Assembly: GCA_004764695.1 (NCBI GenBank)
Contig: SMSO01000036.1
Coordinates: 2,294,001 to 2,358,000 of the forward strand
Length of the DNA: 64,000 bases
From: Schizochytrium sp. TIO01
Lineage: Eukaryota > Protista > Bigyra: Labyrinthulomycetes
Direction: 5' to 3'
Position numbers and translations under genes: made by a program. The notes under the pieces are model-generated. The model was not told the DNA's origin, made no database searches, and saw nothing but the letters and a program-made list of their open reading frames with translations. Shown in pieces: positions 41,788 through 51,547 of the stretch; the first letter of the stretch is position 1; the number at the start of each line of letters is the position of its first letter.

Positions 41788-41891
41788 TGTGGATGGTTTT
41801 GCAAGAGTTCTAGTCTGCAGTTTCTCCGCTAGTCGTTACTTTCAAGCAGCGTATACTCGCTGCTGATGCGTCTGCAAGTTATCTTGTATCC

Positions 41892-42674
41892 CTACAAGAG
41901 GCAACTAAGCACGTGCAAAAGTGCTTGAATGAATATTAAGTTTCTTCGCACAACACACCAAGCAATCTGTATACCTTGCTCAAATCCTAACTGTTCACGA
42001 ACACCACTCAGGTAGCAGTGGCAAGCGAATCTCCTACCGTTAAAATCAATGAAGTCTGTCTATGTCAAATTATCAGAGATGTTGCCAATGACAGAGAACA
42101 AGAGAGATTACCCTTCTGACTTCAATCAAGTCGCCAAAGCTATATATCAGAAATTGCAGCGCGCAGTGCTCTCAATCAATGGACCGATCGATCGCTCGCT
42201 CGCACACACCCCTGCTTCGCTGTATGTAAGTGCTGTCTCAAAATTGATGAGAGATGAGGTCCAAGAGCGATGTCGAGCTTTGCGGCGAGGACAAAGGTCT
42301 GCAGCGCCCTTTAGTGAAGAGCCAAACGAAGCTCTCGCAGCAAATATACTTCCAGACCAAGGTCTGACAAGAAGGGTGCGAAGGCGAGTTTGAGCGTGAA
42401 GAGAGAGAGGGAAGTCTCAACTCAACCTGAGGTGATTTACTTAATTCTACAGCGATCCCTCGCTCGCTCGATACGGCGCGCGATGTTGTTGACCGTGCAG
42501 GACCACCAGCGTAGAGGATTACCCGGGCAGTTGCGAAGCGGTATGAGTGGATACCAAAGCAAGTCCAGTGTCACGCAACTCGCGCGAGCACGACGAGCGT
42601 CGATAGACTGGCGGAGCACGCGCCGACTTTGTTTCTTTGTTTGCTTGTTTCTTTGTTTCTTACTTCTCGTTTCT

Positions 42675-42705
<31 letters not shown>

Positions 42706-43143
42706 ATTGAGAAAACAAAACAAACAAAAACTTTCTAATTCTTTTCTCTCTCTGTCTCTTTCCTTAAAAAGGTTCAAACTTATTGATTGTTTGTTTGTCT
42801 TTTGTTATCTCCGCCTTCTTTCTTTCTTGTCGCCTGAGGTCTCTTTCTTAGATTCCGTCTGTCTGTGAACCTCGTCTTCCCGCAAGAGAGCACCGCTGCT
42901 GCTGCTGCTGCTGCCGACAGGTTCCCGAAGACCGCGCTGAGCCGCTGCGAGAGGCCTGCCTGCCTGCCTGCCTGCCTGCCTGGGCTCGACAGCGGCGCGA
43001 GAGGATCAGAACGGCACTCAATGGACGAAAGGATTCGTGAGTGCGAAGAGATTCAAATCAATTCAATTCAATGCGCAAGTGAAAGAATCGAGCGATTGAA
43101 AACGAGGCCAACCAAAGAAAGAAAGAAAGAAAGACTCACGCAC
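41892..43143 (-). other. Possible 5'-UTR intron of the PAK gene, microsatellite-rich
   Basis: Minus-strand AG|GTGCGT at 43143 and CTCTTGTAG| at 41892. Contains (TTTC)n, (GCT)n and (CCTG)n. Unverified. Confidence 0.25.
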
Positions 43144-46100
43144 CTAGCTGCCTCCGAGCTGGCGAGCTGGGTGGCTGCGTGGGTGGCTCGCTGCCTCTCC
43201 GTCTCCAGCTAGGCGGCTGGCTAGCTAGATCGCAGCTCGCTCGCTCGCTCGCTCAATCGCCTTCCGAGTCTGCCTGGGCGCGGGACCCGGGCACGAGGCA
43301 TCCGTGGCCCTCTAAAACTTGTAGCATATATGTCCCCTGTGAGCAGCAAAATATTTGAGGAAACAGCCAGAATCTTGGAACGACCGCGGATTAACATGGC
43401 GCGTTCTTTTCGTTCTTTTGGAGCAAGCCTCGCCCCGCGCGTGCCGCAAGCGCAAACCCGGTGGCAACGGCGAACGGGCAGCACGAAGGCGGATTTGGGA
43501 GCAGGGAGGGGCCCCAGAGGTCTAAGGGACTGCACAGACCAAGTTTGGGCCCCCACAAGACAGCCCGTGCTGCGTATTCCGCTGGGGATGTGCTTGGCAC
43601 GCGTGGGTTGATACGAGTCGCGAAAGACCTCTATAAGCAAGGATATCCTAGGCTCTTTACATCCATGTGCACGCGTAGCACATGGATAGCTTAAAAGCTA
43701 GTAAACATTGCAGCGTGTGATCTGACCCCGTGTGCGAGCTGGGTAGAGTATCATTTACTGGGGGCACACGGGGGTAGAGAAGACGTTTTAGAGTATTGTG
43801 AGTGTGTGCTGCGAAACGAGGTGTCCGAAAGAGGATTCTGTGATGAGAGATCACTCACGGTGTCAGTCCACACAATCTGACACCATTTCAAGGACACGAA
43901 TGCAGAAGCTCAACATCAGCAGATCCAACCAACATCGGTTCACACAATTCAGCAATCACTACCACTGCCTGGCTAACCTATTTTGTATTTCGATTTTCAG
44001 TGAACTGATCGAGATGAGAAAACTATGGATGGATTGATTTTATTATTGTTTAAGGACAGTCCAACTGCAACCAAGGTATTGTATTGATTTCGACTGATGT
44101 GGCCAAAAAGGACACAGCCCAGAGATACTTATGAAGCAGGAAAAGCAGGTGCAGGTCTGCAGAAAGGCGCCCTGAAACGGAAAAGCTCACACGAGAAGAA
44201 TCGACATGTTTTTACTTGAATGCCGGTACCAGCAAAACAAGTACTGCTCGAGCAAAGGCTCTTCGGTCACCAAGAGTTCCAAACCGCGCAATAGTGACAA
44301 TGATGATGATGGGTGCGCAATGAAGAGAGAGGTTCAAGAGATACTGATGAGGTGGATGAAGCGGGACAAGAGCAGTCACGGTAGCTGCAGCTTCATTGCC
44401 AGACTGGTACAGGCAACTAACTAGGTACACAGATGGCTACAAATGCTGAAGAAACGATATCATCAGTCGCTTCTAGTAGACAGACACATGGTTAACATCG
44501 AGAGAAGCCACCGCAGGTGCCAAGATGGGTTCACCTGCTCTGTAATCAGGCAGATTCATCGCACGAGGTACCTTGAAAGCGCTCTGTTCGGTCAGAGGCA
44601 ATTCCTATGAAAACCTTCTACTTGGATTTTAACTCAAGTCAGCACACGTATAATATAACTTCCTATCTGAGTCTGGCCTCAAGACTCATCACCGAATACT
44701 GGCGGAGTCCACAGCTGATCGAGACAGCTTTTACCAAACTTTCTTAAGACCGAGTAGGCATGAAACCTAGTATGCGCAAGCAGCATCAGAAGAGTGTGCA
44801 CCATGAATTACTTCCTACTGCACTTTGACAGATGTCATCTGACACGAGGTCTACTCAACTACTCAACAGCAGGTTCTGCCTGCCAGTTGGTCTGTCGGAG
44901 TGCAAGAAGTGCAGGAAACTCCTCGCGTTCGTACGATTGGTTGCTAGGTAGGTAGACATTTATTTACTCATAAAGGTATCGAGATACAGAGTTCGTCGTT
45001 TTCTTTTCTTTTCGCTTCTTCCTCAATGTTTCTAGGTCACACTGTTGTACGTCTGTCGTGAACTCCGTTGACTGGTCAGAAGAACTTTAGGCGCTCACTT
45101 GCTACCAAGATTGCGCAGAAATTAGCACAGATGGGTGTACCATTCTAGTTCGAGGAGCCCGTGACTGGTCTCCAAGGCCCGTCAGTGCGTATCAAATGAT
45201 ACAGGCCGTGATCCTCCTAATTTGGAGTAGTACGGAAGCACCAGAGTAGTTTTAGATTTTCGCTATTTAATAAAACAAATCATTCATACAAATAGAAACG
45301 AAAAAACCCTGGTTTGTTGAACCACAAAGTCGAGCTGTGAGGTGCGAGCTTGCTGTTCAGTAACCCTTCAAAAGAATAAATAAGTAATAAAATAACTAGA
45401 ACGTGTGTCTGTATTCGCAGCTTGGTTGATTTAATTAGGGCTATCCACATAGGTAAAAAAAATGCTGGTGAGAGAAACTAAATAAAGTAAAAGCTCTGAT
45501 CAATCAGAGTACAACAATGGGAGAATTTAGTTATACGATCGCTAAAAACGAAATATTGATTGGTGAAAGATCTTTCGAAAGAATGGCAAATATCCCAATT
45601 GCAAAACCCATGCGGTATTACGTTCACAAAAGTCCATTTTCAATCATCTCTGTTGATCGAAAAAGTAAGTCCCTGGTGTTTTGTGGGTCGCTAGATTGTT
45701 CTTTTCAAAGAAATCTAGTTCTGCTCTAAAACTACGGAAGGCAGACGGCTCCCAATGCTTGGCGAGAAAGTTTCAAGAATTTACAATCTTGTCTGCAGTG
45801 CAGATTGCACGCTAGCTTGTTCACAACTACAAAGACAATGCCTGTGATGCGCATTGCACTGCCCTCAGGCTCCCTACTAATAATTCCATTAGTGTTTCCG
45901 CGCGACTTACTCAGTGTATGTTAAGGAACACCATTTTTTCCTTCACTGCAACACAATCATACGTTTTGTTTTTTTTACTGCCCACTGCCATGATACTTCC
46001 CTTGTGCATTTTATTCGCTCAAACGTTTAACGATTTATATCACTTCTCGAAAAGGATGTGGCATTCACTTCAACTGTAGGTTTCGGTGTAGGAGCAAGGT

Positions 46101-47083
46101 TACTTTATATATGCTAATTATATCAGGACTCTGTTTTTGCCTGCAATGCTCTATATCATTCGTTGTGCCTTCCAAAGTTCATGGCGCAAGACAAGGTTAT
46201 ATATACTGTTCAAAATGCAAAACCCACAGACAAATCAGCCATCTTTGCACATGTGGTGAGGTTGGAGCGTGTGCAAACCACACGCTCCAAAACTGCTCTG
46301 GCCTTCACACGCTCGCACATTTTCTTACCTCCCCTGACTACAAATCTTGCGCAAGTCCTAAAGTTATATACTACTAAACCTAGGCGAAAACTCCCAAACT
46401 TGTGTGTGTCGCGAGCACTGTGCTAGTGCCATGAGCGATCCAAAACACTGGGAAACACAAGTCTGCCGTGCTCATTTTCCGTTCAGTCTATGCACATTTA
46501 GTTTCTGTGTATGTATGGACATGTGTACAACTTTTCAGGGAGCTTTTAATTTTGAAAGTTATAGTTATAGTTTGTTAGTTTGGTTTTTTAGAGTTCTCTC
46601 CTACGTCATCACTACTCATAACTACTAGATGGTTACTCTTTCTTTTTCTTCTTTTGACAAGAAACGTTGAGACTTGCCAGGTCATGGCTCATTGTTCTCC
46701 ACCACGTCCCAGAATCTATATGGTCTCTTTACAACACATTGTCCTGGAAACTTACACCCTATCCTTATCCTAAGGTTGAATGAGAAAGGGTCACCTCTAT
46801 ATTTGCCTTTGCCTGATTCCAAGAAGTTATGTAGAGGCCAACTCATAAAATCTTTACGAAAATGAAAAGGAACTTTTAGTTCATTGAATACTTTTTTCCT
46901 CTCCGCATCTATGCTCATTTACCTATTACTTCAACGATCGATCCCTCCGTTACGTAGGTTGCAGAACATTATCGATCTACCATTGCTTTGACCGCTGTCG
47001 CGGGATCTCGCGAGGCGGGATAGGTGATAGACCTGGGCTCTGGAAACACCTTAGCTTATCTCAAAGAGGGTTTCTGGAGGACA

Positions 47084-50000
47084 ATGAAGACGGCCAAGAC
47101 TTGGGGCATAGCTCCATGGGCCACAACCGGGCTGCTAGCAGCACTTGCAGCTGGGCCTGTGCTGGAACTCTACGAAAGAAGCTCTGTATACCACGGATCA
47201 ATCGGAGTCCCTAGTTTAGACTCTGGCTGGATGTCATTTCCTGGCTCACCGAAGTCGCGAGATTCTGCAGATGTGCAGTACGTTTGGTGGCGTCAAAATG
47301 CGCACTTGACCATTTTGACGATTATGATCATGATTCTCTTCGCAAGAGGCATCGATTTTCTCATGGTCAGATCTGGAATCGTGAATGTTTTGTGGGCTCA
47401 GCGTATACATTTAGGAGTTGATTTGATCCTATCCTCATTATTTCTTTGGAAAATATATGGATTCTACTGGTGGGTCGTTGCGGCGCATGCTCTTAGCTGC
47501 TATGTTATTGTTGTGGTGGGACGCCGCTTCACGTCACGCCCAGCTAGGCTACTTTTCTTGGCGCTTCTCTGGGCAGTGAATGTCGGCTTTATTCTCAACT
47601 CAAGAAACGCTCAAAATCTGATTTCAGATTTCCTTGAACCATATGAGAAAATCGTGCGTGGCCATATTATTACTCGCCTGCTCTATCGCGTGATGTTGAA
47701 TCCGGGGCAGATGCAGTGGCATTCCAATATTCGCTTCGGCCTATTTAGAACTATCGACTTTGGCACGAGTGAACTTTTGCGAGACCCGGAACCACCTGCC
47801 TCTAACGGAAGATCAGAATCAGCCAGGAAGCGGGCAATTCCTGAATGGCTGTCTTTCTTACGCTATGCTACATATGCTCCTCTTGTATGGCAAGGACCGC
47901 TAATAGGATTTCGCACATTTAATATTCAATCACAACGACGCTATCGTGAAGTTGACGGTCGCCTGAGCGTGCTCCCCATACCATGGAGAAAAGTAGGCAA
48001 ACTCACAATCAAATTGGTCATTTCAATTTTTCTTCGGGAGCTATTGGATCATCACTTCTTTGCTAGCATGTTCTTAAAACGAGAGATCCACTTCCAGTTT
48101 CGGTCTGGAGAAATGATTGTCACTGCGTTTATCTATCTTACAAGTTCGTATACCCGAATGCTCATCACCTGGCGCGTCTTTCAGCTCTGGGCTCTCCTGG
48201 ACAACGTGGAGGTAATAGATAATTTCCCGCATTGCCTTTTTCGTAATACATCTGTGGGGGATATGTGGCGCAACACGAATGCTTCAGTCCATGTATGGAT
48301 TCTTGGTAATGTGTATGGGCCAATATGTGAAGTATTTAAGTTTCATCATCGATGGGGCGTTGTGGCCACTTTTGTGTTCATGGCTGTTTGGCATGGCCTT
48401 GATACCTCCTGGATTTATTTTGCAACATTGAATTGTGTAATCATTCTTCTTGAGCAAGCTTGCTCCGAGAGTGATCTTATTCAATCAATTATGCGCCGCT
48501 TCAATAGAGCTACACAACTTCTCATTACAAGCTTCTCCTGGACCCTCCGTGTCTTGCTATTGTGGTTCACATGGATGAATTTCAAGTCTATCCGTGATGA
48601 TCAAATATCATTTCTGCGCCCGCGCCAAATATTTGGTCGTGCATTTTTGGATGATACAGTGGAAAGTGAGATTGCCGAAAAGTTTAACATTGACAACCAT
48701 ATACGACTCTTGGACAGGGCTTTATTTGGAGGTCTTGTGCCTTACCCCACACAGGTACTAGTTGGCACAATCCTATGTTTCATGAGTATTCGTATTCTTG
48801 TTTATTTTTATGATGAATATCCCACTGCAAATCATTCCTCCGCAAACCTTAGAGAGAAAATCCATCAAAACTCTGACGATGAAATCGCTCACCATGCAGC
48901 AACAAGTTTTGACAACAGAATGCACAAAAGATTTCGCGAAATTGCTTCTCAAAATTCACAATCTCTCCGTATGCATGCTCAAACAATTTGTCAAGTTCTT
49001 ACGTGGCGGGCGGAGGATCACCCAGATGAGCCAGCAGCAGTTTGGCTGAAGGACGAAAAGGGTAAAAACACTCTTTCTTTTACTTTTGGAGATCTCTATC
49101 ATCATAGCGTTAATTTGGCTTGGGATCTCATCCATAAGTATGATGTTTTGCCTGGCGATCGTGTTGTACTTGTTTTTTCACCAGGTCTTGAATTTATGGT
49201 CGGTCTATTTGCCTGCATGTATGCTGGGGCAATTGCAGTCCCTGTATACCCTCCGAACCCGCAAGACACTTCTCGAGATTTGGTCTTTCAAGGAATTTTG
49301 AAAGACTGCGAACCAAAGATTATTCTGTCTGATAATAGTTATATGTTTGTCCGTCGCTTAGGCCAAGCTGTGAATGTTGCCAAGAAGATGTTGGCAGCAT
49401 TGCGGGTTCTTTTTGGCGTAGCAGTGCCCATGACAGTTGCTATGCTTTTACAGAGCATTAAGCTATCTATGAAACAAGTCTACCCACGCCGATATATATA
49501 TATCCCAGATGCTGAGTGGCGCGAGCCGGAGGAACCCAGTTTGCCTTCTCACCCGCTGGAATATGCTCTCGTTGTGGGTGCACTCGTGACTAGTATTTGG
49601 TGTGTCGATTTTCGAGATGTTATGGGCGACAAACGTGAACCAAAGGTCCCCATGTCATACGCAAGGATTCCATGGGTACAAGTACAGCCATTTTCCTTCT
49701 GGCACAAAATTAAAAATCATTTCAGCCATAGTAGAGGCAGTCAAGCAATGAAACGGGAACCCCCCGAGTGTACACCTGCTGATGACCCAAGTGCTGTAGC
49801 ATATCTACAGTATACCTCTGGCTCTACAGGTACACCAAAAGGTGTTTGTATTACTCACGAAAACATTATGGACCAAGGGCACTCCAACCAAGTTGCTTTT
49901 GGCTGCCTTGGCCGGGGAGAAACTGCAGTAAATTGGTGTCCTCAGTATCACGATCTCGGTCTTGTGGTTTGCACACTTAGTGGGTTGTATGCAGGAATTC

Positions 50001-51547
50001 GACTTGTAAGCTTCTCTCCATTGGTATTTCTCCGCAACCCACTTCTTTGGGTGCAGACTGTAAGCAAGTACTCTGCGAACTTTTCAGCAGCCCCAAATTT
50101 TGCATATGCCTATACAGCTCGCAAAGCTCGAGCTGCATTAGCTGCAGGCGAATCTCTCGAGGGCCTAAATTTATCATCTTGGCGGGTTGCCGGAAATGGG
50201 GGTGAGCCCGTTCGCGCTAAAGCTCTTGAAGAATTCGCTTCAGTATTTTCTCGCTTTGGTTTTGCCTCTGAGGCTGCATTTCCTTGCTTTGGGCTTGCTG
50301 AGCATACCATTATGGTGTCTGGGCGAAGAGATTTCCGCAAACCAACATATCTGAGCGTGAGCAATCATGCCCTTAGTATGCATCGTGTTGAAATCATTAG
50401 TGAAAGACAAGATGCCAACATGGATAGTGATGATTCATTGACTCTTGTCGGGTGTGGCGAGCCATACGAAAATGTTCAAGTGCTTATTGTTGACCCGAAG
50501 ACACAACTTATGTTGTCAGATCCAACGCGAGAGGTTGGTGAGATATGGCTTGCAAGTCCAAGCGTAGCAGCTGGGTATTGGGGTATGGCCGAGCACGAAA
50601 ATGCGAAAGTATTCGAGGCTCGCCCACATAACTACACATTTAATGCTTCGTTTCTTCGCACGGGTGATCTTGGATTTTTATGGAACGGCGAGCTCTATAT
50701 TTGCGGCCGTTGTAAAGATCTCATCATTATAGATGGTCGCAATATCTATCCTCAAGATATTGAGGCAACAGCTGAACAAGCTGTCTCTCTGCTTCGTCCA
50801 GGCTCTTCAGCTGCTTTCACACAAGACCAACGAGGCCTTTGCTTAGTCGTTGAGCTGCGGCGTGAGTCAAGTGAGGTTGGCATTCCAAAAATTAAGAAAA
50901 TATGCTCTATTGTTCATCAACATGTCCTCAAAGAGCAGCGTGTAAGTGTTTCTGAACTGATTGTCGTCAAATCAGGTACACTTCCGAAGACTTCAAGTGG
51001 GAAGATCCGGCGTCGTGCAGTGGCTGACATGGTGAACCAGCAAGACCCAAAGCTTTTTGGCTCTGTGAAATATCGCGGTTGCGCCAAGGACTTCATCGAC
51101 TCCGAGGGAGACAGCTCTGAAGCAGGTATGTATATAGTTGATGATTTGCTAGATGATCCCACTTACACGGCTATCGTTGAATGTATCTTATCATCAGCGC
51201 CAGAAGACGCACATTTTGTCGCCTCAAGGAGGCTGCAAAAAGAAGATGACGAGGATGAATGGTATGCAGCAGAGAAGGAACGCAGAATGAAAAAAATGAT
51301 TACTATCAAAGAAATTGAAGCAGCCTATAAGGAGTCAATTCTCCATAAAACGCTTGATGAGATTCTTAGTCCTTCCAGTGGTAAGAATTCATCTTCATTC
51401 TCATCGCTTGAAGCGGTTCAATTCGCAGCTACTTTGCAGAAAAAGTTAGAGCTCCGTGGCATTGATGTCAAGCTACCACCGGACGTCGCATTCTGTCATC
51501 CCAGTGTTGGGGCGCTAGCATTATATATTTACGACGCAGATGCTTAA
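47084..51547 (+). CDS. MBOAT (GUP1/HHAT-like) - fatty acyl-AMP ligase - acyl carrier domain fusion protein, ~1487 aa
   Basis: One uninterrupted ORF, first ATG 47084. MBOAT: DSADVQY, YAPLVWQGP, MWRNTNASVH..W, TFVFMAVWHG. FAAL: YLQYTSGSTGTPKG, WCPQYHDLGL, FGLAEHT plus insertion, RTGDLGF, GRNIYPQDIE, PKTSSGKIRR. Carrier: FSSLEAVQFAATL...FCHPSVGALA. Confidence 0.9.
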   Translation: MKTAKTWGIAPWATTGLLAALAAGPVLELYERSSVYHGSIGVPSLDSGWMSFPGSPKSRDSADVQYVWWRQNAHLTILTIMIMILFARGIDFLMVRSGIVNVLWAQRIHLGVDLILSSLFLWKIYGFYWWVVAAHALSCYVIVVVGRRFTSRPARLLFLALLWAVNVGFILNSRNAQNLISDFLEPYEKIVRGHIITRLLYRVMLNPGQMQWHSNIRFGLFRTIDFGTSELLRDPEPPASNGRSESARKRAIPEWLSFLRYATYAPLVWQGPLIGFRTFNIQSQRRYREVDGRLSVLPIPWRKVGKLTIKLVISIFLRELLDHHFFASMFLKREIHFQFRSGEMIVTAFIYLTSSYTRMLITWRVFQLWALLDNVEVIDNFPHCLFRNTSVGDMWRNTNASVHVWILGNVYGPICEVFKFHHRWGVVATFVFMAVWHGLDTSWIYFATLNCVIILLEQACSESDLIQSIMRRFNRATQLLITSFSWTLRVLLLWFTWMNFKSIRDDQISFLRPRQIFGRAFLDDTVESEIAEKFNIDNHIRLLDRALFGGLVPYPTQVLVGTILCFMSIRILVYFYDEYPTANHSSANLREKIHQNSDDEIAHHAATSFDNRMHKRFREIASQNSQSLRMHAQTICQVLTWRAEDHPDEPAAVWLKDEKGKNTLSFTFGDLYHHSVNLAWDLIHKYDVLPGDRVVLVFSPGLEFMVGLFACMYAGAIAVPVYPPNPQDTSRDLVFQGILKDCEPKIILSDNSYMFVRRLGQAVNVAKKMLAALRVLFGVAVPMTVAMLLQSIKLSMKQVYPRRYIYIPDAEWREPEEPSLPSHPLEYALVVGALVTSIWCVDFRDVMGDKREPKVPMSYARIPWVQVQPFSFWHKIKNHFSHSRGSQAMKREPPECTPADDPSAVAYLQYTSGSTGTPKGVCITHENIMDQGHSNQVAFGCLGRGETAVNWCPQYHDLGLVVCTLSGLYAGIRLVSFSPLVFLRNPLLWVQTVSKYSANFSAAPNFAYAYTARKARAALAAGESLEGLNLSSWRVAGNGGEPVRAKALEEFASVFSRFGFASEAAFPCFGLAEHTIMVSGRRDFRKPTYLSVSNHALSMHRVEIISERQDANMDSDDSLTLVGCGEPYENVQVLIVDPKTQLMLSDPTREVGEIWLASPSVAAGYWGMAEHENAKVFEARPHNYTFNASFLRTGDLGFLWNGELYICGRCKDLIIIDGRNIYPQDIEATAEQAVSLLRPGSSAAFTQDQRGLCLVVELRRESSEVGIPKIKKICSIVHQHVLKEQRVSVSELIVVKSGTLPKTSSGKIRRRAVADMVNQQDPKLFGSVKYRGCAKDFIDSEGDSSEAGMYIVDDLLDDPTYTAIVECILSSAPEDAHFVASRRLQKEDDEDEWYAAEKERRMKKMITIKEIEAAYKESILHKTLDEILSPSSGKNSSSFSSLEAVQFAATLQKKLELRGIDVKLPPDVAFCHPSVGALALYIYDADA

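Follow-up and report, generated by a model that had tools for sequence, protein, structure and literature searches.

To our knowledge, the characterized eukaryotic membrane-bound O-acyltransferases (MBOATs), namely, HHAT, PORCN, GOAT, GUP1, LPCAT3, MBOAT7, DGAT1, and ACAT, all use acyl-coenzyme A (acyl-CoA), and only bacterial DltB takes its acyl group from a carrier protein. In the Dlt system, the adenylating enzyme DltA loads the phosphopantetheinyl carrier DltC, and DltC feeds the MBOAT DltB, the target lying across the membrane (PDB 6bug). In HHAT, 12 helices span the membrane, the N- and C-termini are cytosolic, palmitoyl-CoA enters on the cytosolic side, and the substrate comes in through a lumenal cavity (PMC8693861). 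Every fatty acyl-AMP ligase (FAAL) characterized to date transfers to a holo-acyl carrier protein (holo-ACP) (PMC12820801), and the FAAL fusions recorded in two surveys comprise lysophospholipid acyltransferases, polyketide synthase (PKS) and nonribosomal peptide synthetase (NRPS) modules, HemY/catalase, and DIP2 (PMC8460268, PMC12820801). Here, we describe a gene of the labyrinthulomycete Schizochytrium sp. TIO01 (assembly GCA_004764695.1, contig SMSO01000036.1), located in a 64,000-nucleotide stretch covering positions 2,294,001 to 2,358,000 of the forward strand (the window), which encodes an HHAT/GUP1-type MBOAT, a FAAL, and a plausible, divergent carrier domain in one polypeptide. We lean modestly toward the reading that this protein is a single-chain, CoA-independent relay, in which the FAAL would load its own carrier, the carrier would feed the MBOAT, and the acyl group would pass to a lumenal or membrane acceptor.

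A known parallel to such a relay is Dlt, whose logic of adenylation, carrier, and MBOAT the fusion protein would share, as predicted from its sequence. Whereas Dlt is bacterial, is built from three proteins, and handles D-alanine, the fusion is eukaryotic, consists of one polypeptide, and pairs an HHAT-like MBOAT with a FAAL that is not DltA-like. The initial annotation, made from the nucleotide letters of this stretch, had already proposed a Dlt-like logic, and that logic fits the topology derived from HHAT, with its cytosolic C-terminus and cytosolic donor site. Each module and the logic of the relay have precedents; in the literature searched, we found no description of their combination, of the putative membrane insert in the FAAL, or of the altered donor loop in the MBOAT. 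The coding sequence and its main parts are as follows.

47084..51547, plus strand: whole coding sequence, ATG start, 1,487 amino acids (aa) plus stop codon (51545-51547), intron-free
47084..48823, plus strand: HHAT/GUP1-type MBOAT fold, residues 1-580 (AlphaFold2, Foldseek, and profile match to HHAT)
48824..48973, plus strand: low-confidence linker, residues 581-630 (AlphaFold2 predicted local distance difference test score [pLDDT] <50 for residues 580-620)
48974..51043, plus strand: FAAL, residues ~631-1320, large N-terminal part plus small C-terminal subdomain (NCBIfam, PDB, and Foldseek)
51263..51544, plus strand: putative ACP-like carrier, residues 1394-1487 (PP-binding match at threshold, hhalign, and predicted helices)

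The reading frame is already open upstream, from a GTG at 47024, has its first ATG at 47084, and contains no internal stop. Roughly 1,500 codons without a stop at 44% GC are far beyond chance, and the next-longest open reading frames (ORFs) elsewhere in the window reach at most 752 aa. The initial annotation had described one stop-free ORF at 47084-51547, and the 1,487 codons found on the plus strand agree with it; its landmark codons are likewise exact (48278 for Asn399, 48392 for His437, and 51404 for Ser1441), and all three residues are invariant in an alignment of five orthologous sequences, comprising the query and the proteins designated P0002 to P0005. The homology to P0003 extends from end to end (41% identity, 99% query coverage). 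Pfam analysis of the 1,487-aa protein revealed MBOAT, AMP-binding, and AMP-dom_DIP2-like domains, the last being the C-terminal AMP subdomain at residues 1212 to 1316, together with a subthreshold PP-binding match.

Within the MBOAT part, the following features were located.

47813..48559, plus strand: Pfam MBOAT (PF03062) core, residues 244-492 (63.3 bits, cut-off 27)
48233..48235, plus strand: Cys384, equivalent by alignment to the heme-binding Cys324 of HHAT, present in at least 90% of relatives
48278..48280, plus strand: Asn399, equivalent by alignment to Asp339 of HHAT (MBOAT active site), invariant in the five orthologues
48320..48337, plus strand: donor loop PICEVF, residues 413-418, replacing the PLGGS of stand-alone relatives (HHAT P353-Q358)
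48392..48394, plus strand: His437, equivalent to His379 of HHAT, the invariant MBOAT histidine, invariant in 60 sequences
48743..48817, plus strand: last MBOAT transmembrane helix, residues 554-578, aligned with the last transmembrane helix of stand-alone relatives

An AlphaFold2 model of residues 1 to 620, built from a 60-sequence alignment, reached a pLDDT of 87.1 and a predicted template modeling score (pTM) of 0.87. Foldseek placed HHAT at ranks 1 to 4, with template modeling scores (TM-scores) of 0.75 to 0.78 when normalized by the target and 0.61 to 0.63 when normalized by the model, the best entries being 7q1u and 7urf (target-normalized, 0.76 to 0.78); on the target-normalized scale, PORCN reached ~0.58 to 0.60 and DltB 0.49 to 0.50. 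A profile made from the MBOAT domain and its nearest relatives, among which GUP1/HHAT-like proteins of eukaryotes such as chytrids and stramenopile algae predominate, matched HHAT residues 6 to 494 at 7.8e-46 and did not retrieve DltB; with phmmer, the MBOAT part on its own gave no match against the PDB at E ≤1. The HHAT/GUP1 affinity that had been suggested from the letters is borne out by the four top structural ranks and by this profile match, and a DltB-type origin of the MBOAT was rejected, since DltB stands below HHAT and PORCN in the Foldseek ranking and is absent from the profile matches.

The likeness to HHAT and GUP1 extends from the fold to individual positions, with equivalents of His379, Asp339 (an asparagine here), Trp335, Arg336, and Cys324. 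The catalytic pair Asn399 and His437 is separated by 38 residues, in line with the family expectation of ~35 to 40, and Trp395 and Arg396, which align with the gating Trp335 and the phosphate-binding Arg336 of HHAT, are conserved. The counterpart of Cys384, which binds heme in HHAT (PMC8693861), is missing from P0004. Stand-alone relatives end 10 to 40 residues beyond the helix aligned to residues 554 to 578. Because this helix corresponds to their last transmembrane helix, the MBOAT fold occupies residues 1 to 580, beyond the Pfam hit, and the MBOAT region named in the initial annotation is present with its end shifted from ~48810 to ~48823. Since this last helix is common to the fusion and HHAT, a cytosolic C-terminus is expected, with a donor site open to the cytosol and an acceptor reaching the enzyme on the lumenal side; homology would thus place the FAAL and the carrier on the cytosolic face, the same side as the donor tunnel. 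The fusion differs from HHAT and GUP1 in its 900-residue FAAL-carrier extension, its replaced PLGGS motif, and an identity to HHAT of only ~15%, and its predicted donor is an acyl-carrier rather than acyl-CoA.

The replaced motif lies in the donor loop. Nearly all stand-alone relatives carry Y-x-P-L-G-G-S at this place, and the counterpart loop of HHAT (Gly355, Ser357, and Gln358) holds the adenine and phosphates of CoA (PMC8693861). All five fusion proteins, together with two further MBOATs (P0130 and P0132), have P-[ILV]-[CVS]-[ED] instead. As judged by alignment, the loss of the CoA-nucleotide-binding loop in the fusion clade is new relative to HHAT-like MBOATs. A nucleotide-free donor would be in keeping with this loss, but the apparently stand-alone nature of P0130 and P0132 makes the argument no more than suggestive. 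These two proteins (718 and 610 aa, respectively) are the nearest apparently stand-alone MBOATs, and they carry WRNxNxS and P-x-x-[ED] in place of WHxS and PLGGS. Their gene models may be truncated, or the proteins may cooperate with a separate FAAL-ACP; BLASTP lent no support to the idea that the tail of P0130 retains part of a FAAL.

The adenylation domain, for which the following features were mapped, is a FAAL.

49331..49789, plus strand: clade-specific insert, residues ~750-902, between motif A2 and the P-loop; PDB matches are split in two here
49811..49843, plus strand: P-loop YTSGSTGTPKG (motif A3), residues 910-920, invariant
49934..50101, plus strand: CoA-pocket-blocking elements W951, P953, L958, helix region 979-986, and F1006, from gap-free alignments to solved FAALs
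50309..50533, plus strand: FAAL-specific insertion (A5-A6, FGLAEHT to VGEIW), residues 1076-1150, aligned with 3kxw and slightly longer
51002..51004, plus strand: Lys1307 of SGKIRR (A10 catalytic lysine), invariant in the 5-orthologue and 47-sequence alignments

Pfam AMP-binding covers residues 640 to 1166 (188.8 bits). NCBIfam FAAL models score ~300 to 340 bits (PRK05850, 340; FadD32, 295), compared with 138 bits for PRK06187, the highest-scoring acyl-CoA-ligase model not belonging to this top group; within the group, PRK07768, which is named a CoA ligase, scores 299 bits. The closest sequences in the PDB are all FAALs (Legionella pneumophila 3kxw at 1.8e-94, Synechococcus olefin synthase 7r7e-g, FadD32, FadD23, Escherichia coli 3pbk, and FadD28), and a Foldseek search with the AlphaFold2 model of this domain (pLDDT 83.1) placed FAALs at all of the 29 best-ranked chains. 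Identity amounts to 38 to 46% with NRPS/PKS loading modules and to ~24 to 29% with solved FAALs (Foldseek). The other core motifs are intact and invariant as well, including A5 (FGLAEHT, 1069), A7 (LRTGDLG, 1191-1197), A8 (GRCKD, 1208-1212), and A10 (SGK, 1305-1307), and the distance from Glu1073 to Gly1152, with VGEIW beginning at 1151, is 79 residues, which is FAAL-length. In the E. coli enzyme EcFAAL, the residues that block CoA are W224, M231, and F279 at the base of the pocket and the prolines P226 and P259 (PMC8460268). The series W224/P226/M231/P259/F279 corresponds to W951/P953/L958/P986/F1006 here, four of the five being identical and the exchange of M231 for leucine conservative, and AlphaFold2 predicts a short helix at residues 979 to 984 within the FAAL-specific helix region. 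Family models, PDB matches, Foldseek, and CoA-blocking residues agree with the earlier proposal of a FAAL with an insertion after FGLAEHT.

Between motif A2 and the P-loop, the domain carries ~150 residues, versus ~45 at the same place in solved FAALs. AlphaFold2 predicts in this insert a 39-residue helix (751-789) with a 24-residue hydrophobic run, a beta hairpin (792-812) bearing an invariant PDAE (P808-E811), and a second hydrophobic helix (824-840), all at a pLDDT of 81 to 91, and the hydropathy peaks coincide with both helices. We interpret the insert, from this model, as a possible membrane hairpin or monotopic anchor. All five fusion proteins retain it, the other four FAAL genes of the genome lack it, and a word search with the insert alone matched only the organism's own transcript; by sequence comparison, the insert is new relative to known FAALs.

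At the C-terminus, the candidate attachment site is as follows.

51404..51406, plus strand: Ser1441, candidate phosphopantetheine site (FSSL motif), located at the start of predicted helix II

The PP-binding match (PF00550, residues 1439-1482) scores 19.2 bits in the whole protein and 20.9 bits in the isolated C-terminal 108 aa, the cut-off being 20.8. The column of Ser1441 is invariant in a 47-sequence alignment, in which it is aligned with the serine of the DSL motif of 41 FAAL-ACP loading modules, and hhalign against the ACPs of FAAL modules gave a probability of 79% (E = 1.7e-5). Helices are predicted by AlphaFold2 at residues 1394 to 1420, 1441 to 1457, 1468 to 1471, and 1475 to 1486. A terminal carrier-like domain with its serine at 51404, as the initial annotation had put forward, is plausible in view of the invariant column, the hhalign result, the position at helix II, and the PP-binding content of an ESM Atlas cluster (described below); from alignment and model, we regard the domain as a plausible divergent carrier. 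The genome contains at least three phosphopantetheinyl-transferase domains (PF01648 loci), and because it has these loci as well as other FAAL/PP-binding proteins, FAAL and PP-binding modules appear to be in use in the organism.

In its order of FAAL followed by carrier, with the serine aligned, the C-terminal half resembles the bacterial FAAL-ACP didomains of PKS and NRPS systems (olefin synthase 7r7e, L. pneumophila 3kxw, and FadD32). It differs from them in having no downstream condensation or ketosynthase domain, in the MBOAT upstream, in the ~150-residue A2-A3 insert, and in reading SSL rather than DSL at the serine. Four more FAAL ORFs occur in the genome (810 to 1,795 aa), and PP-binding was found in all three that were scanned. 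Those on contig C33 form a tandem pair, one member of which has a hexapeptide-repeat transferase match. Their positions are as follows.

G000:C33:2419829-2428855 (L094 2185-7572, minus strand): other FAAL ORFs, tandem pair
G000:C3 (L095 2917-7131, minus strand): other FAAL ORF
G000:C32 (L096 3278-5710, plus strand): other FAAL ORF

The fusion is conserved beyond this genome. Four further proteins, P0002 to P0005, have the same domain order at 38 to 53% identity; all are predicted as single proteins of 1,262 to 1,623 aa. P0002 is GBG31778.1 of Hondaea fermentalgiana, automatically named "4-coumarate-CoA ligase 4," and the three others are metagenomic or unnamed (P0003, 1,461 aa; P0004, 1,623 aa; and P0005, 1,280 aa, found in six metagenomes). 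The model of P0002 lacks the region matching residues ~545 to 760, that is, the last MBOAT helix, the linker, and the first part of the FAAL, which probably reflects a gap in the gene model, and its automatic name is probably misleading. An HMMER search with the N-terminal 620 aa against 1.84 billion representative proteins, which replaced an earlier word-index search with the same query that had given no match, returned just 487 matches at E ≤0.001. Seven proteins were listed at ~1e-30 or better (six by the program's tally), namely, three fusions, the organism's own transcript peptide, and P0130, P0131, and P0132, the last three being short or apparently stand-alone MBOATs. An ESM Atlas cluster with a representative of 1,459 aa has 110 members, all eukaryotic, with AMP-binding in 100%, MBOAT in 72%, and PP-binding (PF00550) in 53%. 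The fusion family is small and real, and it extends beyond one genome.

Within the assembly (64 Mb, 37 contigs), the fusion gene is single copy. The only other match to its MBOAT part, at G000:C13:7033395-7033709, lies in a 955-aa frame with 25% identity over residues 348 to 450 and presumably belongs to an ordinary MBOAT. A metagenome scan with the orthologue alignment and FAAL-generic patterns gave, among the matches listed, FAAL-only loci over residues ~600 to 1390, which are probably bacterial and do not bear on how widespread the fusion is.

At the transcript level, the best database match was a peptide from the MMETSP0961 transcriptome, whose label starts with "Auranti" and which covers residues 498 to 1487 with 988 of 990 positions identical (99.8%). 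This identity bears out the thraustochytrid host that had been guessed from the sequence. Its first residue, Met498, falls within an MBOAT helix that precedes the last transmembrane helix of the fold. Because the peptide begins within the MBOAT fold and runs into the FAAL, an mRNA spans the MBOAT/FAAL junction; transcription over the full length is documented only in part. The header of this peptide (P0001) gives TAXON_ID=87120, which in the NCBI taxonomy is the fungus Rhizopogon burlinghamii, while Aurantiochytrium limacinum is 87102; this looks like a transposition of digits.

Two other kinds of protein invite comparison. Aas and the bacterial fusions of FAALs with lysophospholipid acyltransferases, which have been described (PMC8460268, PMC12820801), likewise unite adenylation and a membrane acyltransferase in one protein and proceed through a carrier-bound acyl intermediate. 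They differ in that their acyltransferase has a PlsC/AGPAT-type fold and acts at the cytoplasmic leaflet, and Aas borrows a free ACP; an MBOAT of the HHAT type, by contrast, is able to hand over its acyl group on the far side of the membrane. No PlsC/AGPAT-type domain was found in the fusion protein in the Pfam scan. DIP2 shows that FAAL-like domains occur in eukaryotes outside PKS and NRPS systems, and the C-terminal AMP subdomain of the fusion matches AMP-dom_DIP2-like. Unlike the fusion, DIP2 consists of a DMAP1-binding domain and two FAAL-like domains and has neither an MBOAT nor a carrier.

Full-text literature searches combining MBOAT with "fatty acyl-AMP ligase"/FAAL, or with AMP-binding, carrier, or fusion, and a search on Aurantiochytrium and MBOAT did not retrieve this architecture. 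MBOAT is unmentioned in the main texts of the FAAL surveys PMC8460268 and PMC12820801 and in the supplements of PMC8460268, and databases name the fusion proteins by automatic annotation only ("4-coumarate-CoA ligase"). The novelty of the architecture suggested at the outset holds insofar as no paper describing it was found, and has to be qualified because the same architecture occurs in at least four orthologues and the 110-member Atlas cluster. The suggestion of a polyunsaturated fatty acid as the substrate found no support in these analyses.

From these observations, we infer the loading of the carrier, the hand-over to the MBOAT, the topology, the chain length, and the acceptor, and we envisage the following relay. 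The HHAT/GUP1-type MBOAT made up of residues 1 to 580 would reside in an internal membrane, probably that of the endoplasmic reticulum, leaving the C-terminus in the cytosol as in HHAT. There, the FAAL would use ATP to convert a free fatty acid to an acyl-adenylate and would transfer the activated acyl chain to a phosphopantetheine thiol attached at Ser1441 in the carrier of the same polypeptide. Next, the acyl-pantetheine arm would reach into the MBOAT through its cytosolic donor tunnel, the site that accommodates the pantetheine of palmitoyl-CoA in HHAT, and His437 together with Asn399 would acylate a hydroxyl or amine on an acceptor arriving from the lumen or within the membrane. The two hydrophobic helices of the insert probably hold the ligase at the membrane beside the MBOAT. 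We regard it as an even call whether the protein is, in addition, the first eukaryotic MBOAT with a covalently attached carrier as its donor, having recruited a bacterial-style FAAL-ACP module with a membrane hairpin of its own, and directs free fatty acids onto a lipid or protein in the lumen or at the surface.

Several results weigh against the relay. The carrier, at 19.2 bits in the full protein, is under the Pfam cut-off, so that its sequence support is marginal; on the fusion proteins, a 60-position ACP hidden Markov model (HMM) from bacterial modules scores only 2 to 5 bits; no significant BLASTP match was obtained between the C-terminus and the ACP region of a paralogue; and P0002 to P0005 have no PP-binding match at E ≤0.01. 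Moreover, the NCBIfam FAAL models match well under their curated full-length cut-offs, the altered donor loop is shared by the apparently stand-alone P0130 and P0132, so that a tie specific to the fusion is not proven, and the sole transcript evidence begins at Met498 and is compatible with a shorter mRNA without most of the MBOAT. The PP-binding score at or under the Pfam threshold and the weak HMM and BLAST tests favor an arrangement in which mere proximity matters: the ligase would make acyl-CoA, or release acyl-AMP, beside an acyl-CoA-dependent MBOAT, and the C-terminus would be a structural or regulatory helical tail. The retention of Arg396, equivalent to the phosphate-binding Arg336 of HHAT, and the use of acyl-CoA by every characterized HHAT/GUP1-type MBOAT (PMC8693861) point the same way. 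We nevertheless consider such an arrangement unlikely: the CoA-rejecting elements of the FAAL are conserved and its best matches are all FAALs, Ser1441 is invariant at the correct structural position and half of the Atlas cluster passes PP-binding, and the CoA-nucleotide loop of the MBOAT is lost.

The FAAL and the carrier might also be real and yet serve another enzyme or lipid, with the MBOAT acting mainly as an anchor or depending separately on acyl-CoA. Other FAAL/PP-binding proteins of the genome do have different partners, one of them a hexapeptide transferase; however, the catalytic residues of the MBOAT are strictly conserved across the fusion clade, a mere anchor needs no intact active site, and the three-domain order is maintained at 38 to 53% identity, which makes such uncoupled modules distinctly unlikely. 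Least probable, to the point that we give it little credence, is an internal start near Met498 that would yield a membrane-anchored FAAL-carrier without a functional MBOAT, or two products. The only transcript-derived peptide does begin exactly at this methionine, but Met498 lies within a helix of the MBOAT fold and the peptide resembles a 5'-truncated transcriptome contig; the 497 upstream codons, furthermore, are stop-free and conserved, with catalytic residues invariant in five species, and the orthologues were called as single proteins.

The surroundings of the gene were also inspected. A functional gene cluster was rejected, the neighbors being an unrelated PAK-type kinase, an inositol monophosphatase, SURF2, and a PAN-domain family. 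At positions 1299 to 27989, the window contains a paralogous array of six tandem ORFs (674 to 702 aa), three on the minus strand followed by three on the plus strand, with weak PAN-domain matches in both of the two ORFs scanned. The 5.2 kb on the 5' side of the fusion gene (41788-47023) include no ORF of at least 150 aa, and the GC content rises to 0.52 at 42 to 44 kb.

That an HHAT-like MBOAT is naturally joined to a FAAL and a carrier argues for a eukaryotic MBOAT donor tunnel able to accept a protein-bound acyl-pantetheine, and the fusion offers a single-chain system for studying the docking of a carrier on an MBOAT. It also widens the uses of FAALs beyond polyketide and peptide synthesis. 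Thraustochytrids are industrial lipid producers, and the fusion marks an unexplored route by which free fatty acids may be steered to a specific membrane or secreted product. Should the protein indeed be the first eukaryotic MBOAT fed by an attached carrier, labyrinthulomycetes and some other protists would possess a CoA-independent route of lipidation.

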